A stretch of DNA of 64,000 nucleotides from Octopus sinensis (lineage: Eukaryota): NCBI RefSeq assembly GCF_006345805.1, contig NC_043014.1:3906001-3970000 (forward strand), written 5' to 3'. Both the position numbers and the translations under genes were made by a program. This document shows, one piece after another, positions 1,687 to 63,572 of this stretch (positions within the stretch are counted from its first letter, which is position 1; each line of letters begins with the position of its first letter). The notes under the pieces are model-generated. The model did not search any database, was not told the origin of the DNA, and worked only from the letters and a program-made list of their open reading frames with translations.

Positions 1687-4600
1687 TCAATATTTACTGC
1701 ACACAACGCAGGTTAATTCGTGACCATTGACATACGGTGGACATGGCAATGAACCACAAGCAGCCTGAACGAAATATAAAACAGCTCCATTTTCGTCTCT
1801 GTAACCTGCTGGATCAGCTTCTGGTGCATAGTCCACACACACATATTCTAGTCTGCCCTTTTCTTCGTGATTACTGGACATCAAATATCCTGAATACTCA
1901 GCTGTCCAACCAGCGTAACACTCATTCCTGCCTGGTAACATCATAACAACAGCAGGTTGTCGTGTCAAACAGACAGCGCACGGAACGTTGTGATCATGAA
2001 GTGATTTAGCGTTAGCAAAAGAAAAAATAGTATTGGTGTCGTATGACTGTAGTTGATATTCACTGCCATAAATCCAACCCGCATTTTCCCCTTTTGCAGT
2101 ATAATTGGCCCAAATGGGGTCGTTGGGTAGGCATAAGAGATTATTTCCGCCACCTGTCTTGTCAAAATTTTGTCCACCAGCCACACCTTGAATTAGTAAG
2201 AATAAATCAAGTAAAAAAGATATTAGGCAAAATTATATATGAAATAACGGAAACATTCATTACAGTTTGACCCTTAAAAGGAGTCATGTTTAGTCACGTG
2301 TGAACGAATTGTGGTGTATGTGTTAGTGTTTATGTAAGTGTAAGCTGTGTGTTGCTGGATGGGAGTGCGCATGTGTTCGCAGCTGTGCGTTTCTCTTCTC
2401 TTTATATATATATTTGTGTGTGTGTGTGTGTGTGTGTGTGTGTGGACGGTTAAGTAATCGTGGTTGTGATGTGTATTGCATGGGGTACATGTTCGTGTGT
2501 GGATGTCAATAAACGGAGAAAGGAAAGGGATATTGTAACGCATGTGGTCGTGATTTCCCGAAATGGAAAAGATGTCGTTCCCGTTTGAACGGGAAAATTG
2601 TTGGTGATGGGAATTGCATGTGGTTTGAGTAGAACAATACGAGAGACGGTGACATGCAGAGAACTGGTGGGTAAGAGGGGATGAAATACTGTTTAGCCGA
2701 CCATACGGGTGTGTCTGGCTATATCCATCGGTTTGTCTGGGACGAGTCAGGCCTACCACGAGACGGTAATACCACATACTATAATATTATGATCACAGAG
2801 ATTTTATTTCATGCAAAGCATGAACTGAGGTGGAGTGAATTTTGAAGCTCATTGATGGCGTAGTGCTTAAGAAGAATGGACAGCGGAGTGGGCGACCGAT
2901 AAACGATATGTGTAGGGTTTATAGAGAGCAGATTCACAAAGGATGCGAGATTGGTTGGAGAAGATGTGGGAAGCAATAGCTTTGAATTGGATGTGCCGGC
3001 GATACCTTACAAAGATATACTGGACAATTAATGAGGGGAGGTGGTGCATGAAAAGAGAGAGGTTTGAGGAATAGGGCGATATCGGTAAGGCGGAGAAGAT
3101 TAGAAGTGCAATATGTACTCACTTGGGTTCCCTCAGTGGTACTTGGTCCCTCCATATTTGGCATAATACATACGGCCCTTAGTTAGCTTTGTCCATTAGT
3201 TACAGTGTATGGGTTGTCCAGTCCACATTGTACATTCTGCGTTCATTTGATTAACCCTATACATTCGTTCATCAATTGATTGTAGTCTATAACTACAATC
3301 AATAGACACTCTAGTTAATGATAGTCAAGTGGCCACTTTTCAGTTCTGGTCACTCACGTATAATACCACCATCCGTATCCAGTACACTTGATCACCAGTT
3401 AGCAGCCTCGGTATTTGATATCTACACTCCATACAAGTCAGCCAGGAGTCCTTGATCGCTGTACTGGATTCCAGTCTAGTCCCTATCTATAATTATACGT
3501 AGAGATATCTATATTCTGAGGTTAGACAACATCATTTTCACCTGGTCCGAAGTAGACAACATTTAAATTCTGATTTGACCAAATACCTACAAAGAAGTAA
3601 GCAGTCTTGTGCAGTCTCAACAGGGTCTATAGGTATCGTTTGAAACGTGATATATCACATGATTTGCTTGAGTGTGCGTGCGTGCGTGTCCGTGTGAGAA
3701 ACGGAAAGAGAGGGGGCGACAGAAAGAGAAAATGAGAGGAATAAAAAGAGAAGAAGAGAAAGATAAAGAGAGAAAGAGTGAACAGAAGTATAGTTTATAC
3801 TAACCGTCATATACAAGGTTTGAATAAGGAGGACAACTTGTTCTGCCCCACCGGGTATACAATGATCCGAGACCGGGTTCTGTGAAATTTAAAATGAAAT
3901 AATTTAGTTTAAAATAAAGAATTCTTGAATCCTATACAAAGGAAGTTGTTGGCTTGGAAGGAATTGATAGAGAGGAGATACATTTAGAATTTAAGAGAGA
4001 AAGAATGAGTGAATGAATGAAAATCAGAATGAAAGAAGTAAATGATTCGCTAAGAATAAATTTTAAACGAAGAAAATTAGTCATTTGTCTATTGAGCCTG
4101 TTGTTGACGTTGATGTCAACGAATTGAGAGATTAATCTCAGAATATCAGAATGTGTATTTGTCTCCCTTAAAAACGGATGTTTGTTTTGTAGTTGAACTT
4201 GGATGTGAGTATATATATATATATATATATATATATATATATCTTTACTCTTTTTTTCTTTTACTCTTTTATTTGTTTCAGTCATTTGACTGCGGCCATG
4301 CTGGAGCACCGCCTTTAGTCGAGCAAATCGACCCCGGGACTTATTCTTTGTAAGCCCAGTACTTATTCTATCGGTCTCTTTTGCCGAACCGCTAAGTGAC
4401 GGGGACGTAAACACACCAGCATCAGTTGTCAAGCAATGCTAGGGGGACAAACACAGACACACAAACACACACACATACATATACATATATATACATATTA
4501 ATACGACATGCTTCTTTCAGTTTCCGTCTACCAAATCCACTCACAAGGCATTGGTCGGCCCGGGGCTATAGTAGAAGACACTTGCCCAAGGTGCCACGCA

Positions 4601-7600
4601 GTGGGACTGAACCCGGAACCATGTGGTTGGTTAGCAAGCTACTTACCACACAGCCACTCCTGCGCCTATATATATATATATATATATATATATATATATA
4701 TTATATATATATATATAAATATACATATATATATACATTTATATATATTTGTGACAATAAAAATGATTAAGTCCTTCTTTTATAGATATGTTGGCAATAT
4801 TATCAATTCTTGGCACCTGATTTGCCATTTACGAATATCAGCTTGGTGTTTGGCGCGAAGAGAGTCCGTTTCCTTCCAGAAGACTAGTATGGCCACCCCA
4901 ATTATGTGTGTGGGGCGATTCCACCCAATCAATACTTCTTGCGGTTATCAGCGTCAAAGTGTGCACGGAAGTCTCCTTGTAAGACAAATGACTTTACCCC
5001 AAATATATCCAAAGCTGCAGTGACTTTGTTAAGGAAGCATTTGTATTTGCCCTCGCTATTGGGTGCATTTACTTCCAACAGCTACACCACTCCTTCATTC
5101 ATAGCGCTTTGTATCGTCCGGTTTTGACAGTCTAATTCTCAATTATGAACGGTTGATCCCATCTGGACCTGCTTCGGTGTTTGGAAGACGCATATTTTGT
5201 ATTCCGTCCCCATTCATCTCAGATTGAGTTGGGTGGAGACTGCAATATATTTCCCGAATCGTCTCCTCCAATCAAGATCCGGGGGCAACTGCTTTTATCC
5301 CACTCGATGGATGACGCGGTATGGCTATTTCTTCGAGCCCTTAGCGTTCTGTAAGTATATGCAGCAAACAGCGATGTCAAATACAAATCCTTCCTAAGCA
5401 AATTCACCTCAGCTTTAGATATATTTGGGGTAAAGTCATTTGTCCTGCAAGGAGACTTCAGTGCACACCTTGGCACTGATAACCGTGAGAAGGATTGATT
5501 GGAAGGAATGTCGTCAGTGAACTTAATGGAGAGGTCATAGCAGCCTTCATTGCAGGATACACACTCTCCTCTCTATGGTATAGATATTCTTTTAAGACAG
5601 GGATATTTATAAGGGTGCCTGATTTAGAAATACTTGGTGACAGAGGTTTCTGATAGATTTCGGTCATCTTTCACTCTTTGCTGAACGTTCGGGTAAAAGG
5701 AAGGGTGGAGTTGTCAACTCGTCACTACCTAAATGTCTAAAAACCTGAAAATTCCTACAGTCTGCAGAACACTGGAAATTGGTAAGTCTAGTGCGACCTA
5801 CAGAATACAGTTGGAAGCCGCAGTGGATGCTGGAATCAGAAACGAAAATGTGGAGACATTTGCATCCAAATTGAGAGTGACCCGCCTGAATGAAGTTGGA
5901 CCTCGAAATGGATTCGTGATTGTATTATGTTTTTCGGCAGGTTCTTCTTCGTTTGAAGGCTTATTTGAGCTAAACTCACTTAAAAGTGATAAAGCTGCTG
6001 GTGAAAAGCACGTTCGGCTTGATATTTTCGAAACTTTAAATACAGATGGTATTCTCTGAGTGACCCATGTATGCTAGGTGGATGAGACCTCTGGAAAAAA
6101 CACCAAGGCAATGGTAATATGGGGTGACAATCATAATCTTTTCAAATTGAGACCAAAGAGTGTATTCTAATTATAGAAAATCTACACTAAATGTCAGGAA
6201 TAGATATGTAGGGAAATTGTCGCGCCCAAGATTACCGTCTTGGACGAAGTACACCCGACCAGAGATTCGTTCAAGACTGATCTTCCAGCCAACATTGAAT
6301 TATTTCCAAGGTTTATACGCTGTAAACCACGGAAAGGCTCAAGATCACGTGCCCTGGGGCATGTTGCGGATGGTTTACCAGGAGGGTGAGTTTAATGGGT
6401 ATATACTGGTTGCCATAAAATACTTATATGGATGTTCAAATGATTGTATTTATGGGCTTGGTACAATTATCGACGTAGCACTGCATGTATACTCATATAC
6501 ACACAATAAAAGGCATATAAGTATATAAGAATAACATTTTATTTAGGAAATTATTGTAAAGTAGAACATAGTTTAAAATAAATTCAGGCAAGTGTCTTAG
6601 TATATATTATTGTGGACATATGGATAGTAATGTGGAACTAATTCAAAGTTGGTGAAATTATAAATCATTAGTTAATGAGTCACGGGTAAAAGACTTTAGC
6701 CATAAAATTAGTTCTTACTTGGTGTGTCATCAGGTTTATCGTCGAGAGATTTCTTGGAGATGAAACGGTTCTTTGAAAAAATAGAAATAGCATCATATAA
6801 ATAGAACTTCAGGATATTTATTATCGTTTCGAACTTAAAACAATGCAATAGATAACAACATATTCGGACAGGTATCATTGCCAACACAACCATGTCAACC
6901 CCTTAGGAATCTTCTAGAAGGCGCTTCAATTCAGTCAAACGACTTCTTGAACAATATCAGACAATACAACTCTGCATTTCAAATGACATCGTTTGGTGAA
7001 TCTAAGAAGATAGATAAACATGAATTTACGCCCACGTCAAAGTTCAAGGGCAATATATGCCTACACGCGCACACACACAAATGAACAACCACAGTTCCTC
7101 CAAATTTACTCTATGAGTGATGTAGGACAACAAACCCGACGTGAAGTGTCAAAATTTCCGATGATGGGCCGTGTTAGACACAGCGCACACTGCTGCAAAG
7201 GAGAGTATATCCACTGACAGCATTTCGGTGCGTTCAAAAATCACACAAACCCCACCTCCAATTTAGCATGACAGGTTAGGGCCTGAAACACTCCAAACGG
7301 ACGCATAGCATGTTGCTTAGTCGAGTTAGCCCAGCATTTACTCAACAAATGTTTTGTTGTCAATGTTGCACTTTCCCATATCACCTGTTTCAAAATGACT
7401 GGAATATATTATATACCATCTTTGCCATTTGAATCCCCAGCAATACCGGGTATGTCTTCAAGTACACACACACACACGCACACATACACACACACACACA
7501 CATATACACACACATATTTCTACACATATATATATATATATACACTCACACATGTATATATATAGTTAAATTTAATCTAAACAAGAAAGCACTAAAAACA

Positions 7601-63075: not shown

Positions 63076-63572
63076 TCAATATTTACTGCAAACAACGCAG
63101 GTTAATTCTTGGCCATTGACATACGGTGGACATGGCCACGAACCACAAGCAGCCTGAACGAAATATAATAGAGCTCCATTTTCGTTTCTGTAACCAGCTG
63201 GATCAGCTTCTGGTGCATAATCCACACACACATATTCATGTCTGCCCTTATGAGCATAATGTTCTGCCATCAAATATCCTGAATATTCAGCTGTCCAACC
63301 AGCGTAACACTGTGTCCTGGCTGGTAACATCATAACAACAGCAGGTTGTAGTGTCAAACAGACAGCGCACGGAACGTTGTGATCATGAAGTGATTTAGCG
63401 TTAGCAAAAGAAAAGAGTTTATTCGAGTTGTGGGATATTTCATATTCACTGCCATAAATGTAACCACCTTTTTCAACTTCTGTAGTATAATTGGCCCAAA
63501 TGGGATCGTTAGGTAAACACAACAGATTGCTTCCGCCACCAGTATGGGTTTGATGTTGTCCACCAACCACAC
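63076..63572 (-). CDS. Gene 5 (partial): terminal exon 4 of a fifth paralog; upstream exons lie beyond the window
   Basis: ctag|GT acceptor, 164-aa open frame VVGGQ..CSKY*, 9 conserved Cys, homologous 3'UTR. Confidence 0.85.

Follow-up and report, generated by a model that had tools for sequence, protein, structure and literature searches.

The window analysed here is a 64-kb stretch of the Octopus sinensis contig NC_043014.1, and it is part of a large octopus tandem array of spongin-type 'short-chain collagen C4-like' genes. These are real genes. Self-BLAST resolves tandem units that follow each other head-to-tail at offsets of 13.6-17.8 kb, with 77-97% identity over the parts that can be aligned. 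Four nearly full-length, cysteine-rich open reading frames (ORFs) of 165 aa are present in the ORF listing, all on the minus strand (1687-2184, 16332-16901, 33514-34011 and 63076-63570). Exon maps were made by tblastn with the octopus proteins of ~256 aa, including P0011 from O. vulgaris, followed by checks of the splice sites and of the spliced frame. According to these maps the complete genes consist of four coding exons on the minus strand, every intron is GT-AG, and the intron phases are 0, 1 and 1.

Gene A is intact and encodes 256 aa (exons 11502-11359, 6770-6719, 3879-3805 and 2186-1687, stop included); it was mapped with P0011, has GT-AG introns and an open spliced frame. Gene B is also intact, with 255 aa (29329-29186, 23698-23647, 20948-20874 and 16828-16332), and gene C has an open frame of 256 aa (44525-44382, 39319-39268, 35815-35741 and 34013-33514). 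Gene D is headless: exons 1-3 are found at 58166-58023, 53905-53854 and 51747-51673, and exon 4 is absent. The last gene, E, is represented by exon 4 only (63572-63076), which encodes an intact head of 165 aa behind an AG acceptor, while its upstream exons lie beyond the window end. The 3' flank of gene A (1..1686, minus strand) shares 93-95% identity with those of units C, D and E, which is what a further unit adjoining the window on the left would lead one to expect. In a homolog search at least 9-14 distinct paralogs were found on one chromosome in O. vulgaris and in O. sinensis. One O. vulgaris locus (L001) has the identical head-to-tail layout; with ~90% identity to the window it is either paralogous or that of a different species. 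The annotations of three other octopus assemblies show similar head-to-tail arrays of many distinct paralogs, on single chromosomes. Judging from the paralogs that share single chromosomes and from the layout of L001, the array certainly extends beyond the window.

The exons correspond to parts of the protein. Exon 1 encodes a tail and a hydrophobic helix, exons 2-3 a stalk and the first strand of the head domain, and exon 4 the remaining head. Residues 1-13 form a polar N-terminal tail, followed by an apolar run of 20 residues (14-33) that is preceded by R8 and R13. The stalk of ~37 aa (residues 34-70) is charged and polar, and it ends in KPGLG or KPGPG at the junction of exons 2 and 3. From about residue 71 to the C-terminus follows a domain with 10 cysteines. 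We considered KPGLG as a vestigial collagen repeat and rejected this, as its glycines are spaced by 2 and not by 3. Runs of four or more Gly-X-Y repeats are absent from all six frames across the 64 kb, and therefore the window does not contain a hidden collagen exon.

The predicted membrane-insertion energy of the hydrophobic run is -2.5 kcal/mol in gene A and -3.6 kcal/mol in gene B, and a cleavage motif with small residues at -3/-1 was not found after it. In the AlphaFold model of P0011 residues 16-48 form one continuous helix, and residues 49-56, in the low-confidence stalk, fall below 50 in the predicted local distance difference test (pLDDT). In amphioxus and many bivalve relatives the hydrophobic stretch is located at the extreme N-terminus and resembles a signal peptide; the octopod segment is longer and comes after two arginines. 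This internal run is kept in the same form across Octopus and Argonauta. The alignment also shows a conserved N-Y-T sequon in the head, and a cysteine-rich head with such a sequon must be lumenal or extracellular. We infer that the hydrophobic helix is an uncleaved signal anchor, hence that the proteins have a type II topology. No evident signalling motif is seen in the 13-aa tail, which would be cytoplasmic.

Much of this layout had been proposed in a first-pass annotation of the same DNA. It counted five copies; the array is confirmed, but only three copies are intact, D being headless and E truncated by the window edge. The limits that it gave, 1687 and 63572, are exact exon-4 boundaries. 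Where it predicted four junctions, we find three coding junctions per gene. The arginine before a signal-anchor-like stretch (Arg13), the polar stalk, put at ~35 aa, the KPGLG as the only trace where a collagen helix would be expected, and the 10-cysteine domain are all present.

The head has the fold of a collagen IV NC1 domain, which we consider established at the level of the fold, as modelled. The AlphaFold model of P0011 was built from an input alignment of 78 sequences, including the four exon-4 products of the window. It has a mean pLDDT of 85.6, and most of the head is above 90. In a Foldseek search against the PDB, ranks 1-35 are all collagen IV NC1 structures, with a best E-value of 2.6e-6 and probabilities of 0.89-1.00 (1.00 for ranks 1-26), and the first match to anything other than NC1 has E > 1. 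No TNF or C1q chain is among the Foldseek matches of this model. A head of the CTHRC1 type was considered as well; all significant Foldseek matches are NC1 instead, and the known CTHRC1 sequence motifs do not seem to match the octopus head.

At the sequence level the relationship is seen as a weak signal, and only when profiles are compared. We aligned the octopus family profile by hhalign with an NC1 reference alignment of seven sequences that were verified against the PDB. The alignment covers 177 columns with 27% identity, and P is 1.3e-3 in global and 2.2e-4 in local mode, compared with 0.15-0.31 for the reversed control. Eight cysteines are in register with NC1 in this profile-profile alignment (CP, CL, CAVC, C-x-GW, C[VL][DE] and CxVC). 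Seven cysteines of the head are invariant (C109, C160, C163, C180, C207, C250, C253), and two more, C234 and C239, almost invariant. The HSQ motif was not found in the head sequences of the window. When the exon-4 products and 75 members of the family were scanned with Pfam, neither a head domain nor PF01413 was detected, and the sole matches were collagen repeats in five members. Going by the NC1 disulfide map, the head would contain the pairs C80-C163, C109-C160, C180-C253 and C207-C250; two small-loop disulfides would presumably be lost and a family-specific pair, C234/C239, gained. This implied pairing agrees roughly with the cysteine classes of Fidler et al. 2017, who distinguish seven shared cysteines, three that are specific for spongins and four that are specific for collagen IV (PMC5395295). 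In the same work spongins are described as collagen IV variants with ~10 cysteines and without the HSQ motif, and are modelled without the domain-swap region (PMC5395295). The C-terminal domain of sponge spongin likewise escapes PF01413, according to a study from 2025 (PMC12749355).

A search with one 165-aa ORF of the window gave 348 homologs at E <= 1e-5. The best of them, of ~256 aa, come from O. sinensis, O. vulgaris and O. bimaculoides and bear the names 'short-chain collagen C4-like' or 'uncharacterized'. Annotations already include near-identical models of 256 aa that share the N-terminus (P0011, P0006, P0021, P0024), and the same exon-1 product is found in annotated models of three Octopus species and Argonauta. 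The Branchiostoma proteins P0079, P0086, P0117 and P0119 (45-52% identity) carry the same head directly behind PF01391 collagen repeats, with 17-18 overlapping Gly-X-Y windows before the domain, which identifies the head of the window genes as that of short-chain collagens. A Gly-X-Y domain was not found in the listed octopod paralogs. A clam protein (P0093) and an amphioxus protein (P0109) have internal-anchor N-termini without collagen, and in many bivalve members a signal peptide precedes a linker that resembles a coiled coil. A crude N-terminal census was made of ~158 full-length relatives. At least six Gly-X-Y repeats are present in 21 of the 158, while an internal anchor-like segment without collagen is seen in 28, a signal-like start without collagen in 13, and no strong hydrophobic segment and no collagen in 58; in the other 38 the region before the domain is absent or too short for classing. 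The architecture of anchor and head is real but already in public annotations, where it is undescribed, and collagen-less relatives are common. Clustered at 50% identity, the head domain itself is represented by 4,603 sequences (E <= 1e-3), yet it has neither a Pfam model nor a solved structure. In some database proteins as many as 9 copies of it are strung together (3,949 aa); these are probably tandem genes that were fused by gene prediction. An RNA-derived contig of 1,104 nt from a relative contains an intronless ORF of 852 nt with the layout of anchor, stalk and head.

In the literature spongins are defined as 'short collagen plus NC1' and are treated as matrix components (PMC5395295, PMC12549020, PMC12749355). 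We found no description of the anchored collagen-less form or of the octopus arrays in the spongin literature searched, and mentions of a mollusc 'short-chain collagen C4' are incidental entries in expression tables. The sole octopus mention in this literature is a peptide of the O. vulgaris ink proteome, which maps to the array-type paralog P0019. The spongin-like genes of Nematostella are expressed mostly in neuroglandular cells, apart from the fibrillar collagens (PMC12549020), and transcripts of the family are enriched in the gill of Mytilus (PMC4581086). Both patterns suggest family roles outside basement membranes.

Three of the copies deviate from the intact form. In exon 1 of gene C (44525-44382) a one-base insertion is followed by a nearby compensating deletion, so that RYSISSLIA becomes ALFHFFSHS and nine anchor residues are rewritten. 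The frame is still open, and the predicted insertion energy rises to +1.45 kcal/mol; by this measure the anchor of gene C is weakened by a compensated frameshift. In gene D, exons 1-3 encode a product that is 100% identical to residues 1-90 of P0011. The intron-3 acceptor (...TTCTAG) abuts sequence that lies ~165 nt past the stop codon in other units, and ~670 bp are lost. The junction was placed at 49280..49300 (minus strand) from the self-BLAST breakpoints and from the comparison of D with A, B and E. An exon-4-like tblastn match was not found between 48914 and 51671. The TAG repeated at both ends indicates that the head exon was probably lost by a microhomology-mediated deletion. If gene D is spliced, the acceptor would add a tail of 23 aa and so give a headless anchor-stalk protein of 113 aa. 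Unit E (63076-64000) is B-like at the end of intron 3 and in the 5' half of exon 4, and A/C-like at the end of exon 4 and in the 3' flank. By its sequence unit E is a recombinant, with a putative exchange point inside the head exon.

The aligned non-coding DNA of the units differs by 6-10% overall, with a median of 6-8.5% per 500-nt window. The divergence between units is 0-2% in exon 1, 0% in exon 2, 1-7% in exon 3 and 9.5-13% in exon 4. Compared with the non-coding 500-nt windows, exon 4 reaches about the 90th percentile or more in the pairs A-B and A-C, and falls slightly short of it in B-C. Its divergence is two to four times that of the immediate 3' flank in A-C, A-E and C-E. The differences in exon 4 cluster in four loops of the surface, 96-107, 112-129, 135-158 and 195-205, in the numbering of the P0011 model. 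The nonsynonymous divergence (dN) of the loops, 0.13-0.34, is higher than the non-coding divergence, and in L1 and L5, the most variable loops, the synonymous divergence (dS) goes up along with dN. Selection was examined by Nei-Gojobori dN/dS for the whole of exon 4 and for each structural element, and no convincing positive selection was found by this method at either level; the ratio exceeds 1 solely in a set of 13 loop codons (2.9), where it is based on ~1.5 synonymous differences.

The flanking sequences of the genes form a mosaic, in which A pairs with C and B with E at the end of intron 3, whereas B stands apart from A, C and E in the 3' flank; unequal exchange and gene conversion are therefore active in the array. 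When octopod subfamilies are compared, anchor and stalk vary as much as the loops of the head. The data can be read in two ways: either the diversity of the head exon is kept against homogenisation, or homogenisation is patchy and the loops are weakly constrained.

The first-pass annotation had described a constant anchor with a variable head. This holds within the array, where exons 1-2 contrast with exon 4, and fails across octopods, where the anchor is not constant. Its proposal of birth and death of copies is borne out by the deletion in gene D, and its expectation that the array continues is supported by the paralog counts. The assignment to the spongin and collagen IV NC1-like family agrees with the Foldseek ranking, the hhalign P-values and the collagen-bearing amphioxus homologs. 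The architecture is not new to the databases, as the annotated 256-aa models with the same N-terminus show.

As the best overall explanation we propose a family of anchored, stalked NC1 heads in an evolving tandem array, where the head is probably an oligomeric binding or assembly module; we rate its chances as slightly better than even. The proteins would be type II membrane proteins, with a disulfide-bonded and N-glycosylated head held outside the cell on a flexible stalk. Like its counterparts in collagen IV and the spongins, the head would probably oligomerise, a trimer being the likeliest form, and would act as an extracellular binding or assembly module that is either cell-bound or freed by cleavage of the stalk. 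Paralogs would differ in partner preference, as set by the loops, and the array would evolve by unequal crossing-over or gene conversion together with gene loss, as in copy D. That the genes encode innate-immune or sensory recognition receptors is a hypothesis drawn from the sequences, and we think it doubtful.

Several of our results weigh against the proposed explanation. The dN/dS of exon 4 is 0.36-0.67 overall, 0.18 in the strands and ~0.6 in the variable loops. These loops vary in each lineage of the family and in all phyla, so their diversity may simply reflect weak constraint. The exact spliced proteins of genes A, B and C were not found in a collection of 15 billion sequences, and some RefSeq isoforms of O. 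sinensis (P0004, P0010) swap exon 1 for anchor-less exons. Searches with phmmer and with a family-profile hmmsearch against all PDB sequences gave no NC1, only chance matches (RING fingers, galectin, E > 0.3). The structure model is that of O. vulgaris P0011, which is 84-88% identical to genes A-C and is not a protein of the window. Its Foldseek TM-scores are 0.31-0.41 (with lengths normalised including the anchor) and the root mean square deviation is 9-10 Å, so the geometric fit to NC1 is moderate only. The anchor is called from hydrophobicity, length and the missing cleavage motif, and the charges flanking the helix are nearly balanced, so that the positive-inside rule leaves the orientation unfixed.

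The alternatives differ in what they make of these points. If the proteins are secreted, either the hydrophobic segment works as a long, cleaved signal peptide or the stalk is invariably cut, and the products are soluble in ink, mucus, skin secretions or the matrix. The O. vulgaris ink peptide, which comes from an array-type paralog, fits this view, but a peptide in ink is no proof of secretion because ink holds cell debris. The signal-peptide-like starts of the amphioxus and bivalve relatives also point to secretion; in the octopus proteins, however, the 20-residue run begins only at residue 14, after two arginines, and has no small -3/-1 residues behind it, and this anchor-type segment is conserved across Octopus and Argonauta. 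A dibasic KK in the stalk, the open frame of gene C despite its weakened anchor, and the role of the sponge spongins as matrix components are further points on the side of secretion, which we nevertheless judge unlikely.

A second possibility concerns the array and not the topology. It may be an ordinary tandem family under concerted evolution, without diversification for recognition, whose members are redundant structural or adhesive proteins. On this view gene conversion evens out most of each unit, and exon 4 seems variable only because constraint on its loops is weak and because some older segments were left unhomogenised. The dN/dS values, the rise of dS with dN in L1 and L5, the variability of the same loops in all phyla, an anchor that is not constant across octopod subfamilies, the frequent exchange seen in the mosaic flanks and the decay of copy D are all compatible with it. 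The divergence of exon 4, close to or above the 90th non-coding percentile in two of the three pairs and near it in the third, its excess over the 3' flank and a loop dN above the non-coding level are hard to obtain by relaxation alone, if flanks and exon share one history. We regard concerted evolution alone as possible but somewhat improbable. Collapsed or duplicated haplotypes in the assembly, in place of paralogs, are a very unlikely cause of the array and could at best be given a negligible chance; nothing that speaks for them was found. Between units, 6-10% of the aligned non-coding DNA differs and there are many indels, and unit length ranges from 13.6 to 17.8 kb; a reverse-transcriptase insertion is found only in B, the exon-4 deletion only in D and the exon-1 frameshift only in C, and comparable arrays of many paralogs lie on single chromosomes in three other octopus assemblies.

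As a family of anchored NC1 heads, the octopus proteins can be compared with several known systems. They share with the spongin short-chain collagens a homologous C-terminal head with ~10 cysteines, without HSQ and without a Pfam C4 match. The spongin-type family occurs only in basal chordates and in invertebrates outside the Ecdysozoa, and the octopus paralogs are named 'short-chain collagen C4-like' by NCBI. Unlike the spongins, the octopus proteins have no Gly-X-Y domain, and where the collagen helix would be they have a stalk that is charged and disordered. The hydrophobic helix at their N-terminus is internal and signal-anchor-like, and probably not a cleavable signal peptide, and the genes lie in a dense local tandem array in which the head exon is the most diverged.

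With collagen IV NC1 (PDB 1LI1, 1M3D, 1T60, 5NAX, 8TYS) the head shares the beta-rich fold of two subdomains, and eight cysteines and the motifs CAVC...C-x-GW and CxVC align. The identity is however only 13-19% and there is no match to PF01413. The octopus head has 10 cysteines and not 12 (six per subdomain), with an extra CGSLPC pair and probably without the two small-loop disulfides. The 256-aa octopus protein also lacks the long triple helix and the 7S domain of collagen IV, and no role in a basement-membrane network is implied.

A looser analogy is offered by the TNF and C1q families and the membrane collagens (XIII, XVII, XXIII, XXV; ectodysplasin), where one oligomerising head is combined with interchangeable collagen, coiled-coil or type II-anchor modules. 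These systems also have short cytoplasmic tails, possible release by stalk cleavage, and tandem expansions in some invertebrates. The fold of the octopus head is unrelated to that of TNF/C1q, so the likeness would be one of analogy and not of membership. In a bolder version of the proposal, octopods, and separately some bivalves and amphioxus, would have made the NC1 head, an old module of matrix assembly, into a tandemly expanded type II tethered family, with the head exon kept diverse while the remainder of each unit is homogenised, and used for recognition. We consider this version distinctly unlikely. If true, the tethered NC1 family would be a counterpart of the TNF/C1q families of recognition ligands, in cell-cell, microbe or chemotactile recognition.

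The head is widely used alone, without collagen, and in octopus it is placed on a predicted membrane anchor in a large, fast-turning tandem array. Transcriptome studies routinely label it, wrongly, as 'collagen'. Describing the head as a stand-alone domain, together with the anchor-type architecture, would improve annotation, and the locus is a tractable system for the roles of NC1-type heads outside basement membranes. If the diversity of the head exon is adaptive, the genes are a candidate cephalopod family for surface recognition; if not, they are a classic example of concerted evolution in which copies are born and lost.

Outside the coding exons, successive units are parted by kilobase-scale microsatellite blocks of low complexity, whose length varies from unit to unit. 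Upstream of exon 1 of gene A (11900..15000) the block is imperfect and TG/CA-rich, and its TATG/CATA-rich intergenic counterparts are located at ~30200-31700, 45600-47600 and 59300-61200. Most of the long spurious ORFs of the window (CVCV, HTHT and YIHT type) come from these blocks. Unit A has in addition an internal duplication of ~1.2 kb (12045-13288 and 13743-14977). Scans of the 64-kb window for tRNA genes and Rfam families found nothing. The reverse-transcriptase ORF in intron 1 of gene B encodes 504 aa (28381-26867, minus strand; PF00078, E = 3.9e-31) and belongs to a non-long-terminal-repeat element of the long interspersed nuclear element (LINE) type. It is present in unit B only, and it explains part of the extra length of this unit.

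Some sequences within introns and flanks resemble exons of annotated isoforms. On the minus strand, the intron-2 segments 22429-22367, 21616-21545, 5881-5819, 38086-38024 and 52516-52323 match the anchor-less 5' coding exons of the O. sinensis RefSeq isoforms P0004, P0010 and P0001. These matches lie downstream of exon 2, and one of them, in unit B, contains an in-frame stop. The isoforms may be read-through or chimeric models across adjoining units. In the 3' flanks, the segments 1143-1000, 32984-32841, 48914-48771 and 62530-62387 (minus strand) match the last 26 residues of O. sinensis P0001, KYHKMFNLSSLRMWNLHDQNLKRQYK. The segment is open in unit A, while a stop is found just upstream of it in the other units. 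The match to P0001 points to a putative alternative last exon, by which the final CxVC strand would be replaced. Exon 3 (for example 3879-3805) has 75 nt and is symmetric, with phase 1-1. The O. vulgaris proteins P0002, P0020, P0035 and P0040 omit it and thereby lose the first strand and the first cysteine of the head, which is likely due to mis-annotation or exon skipping.

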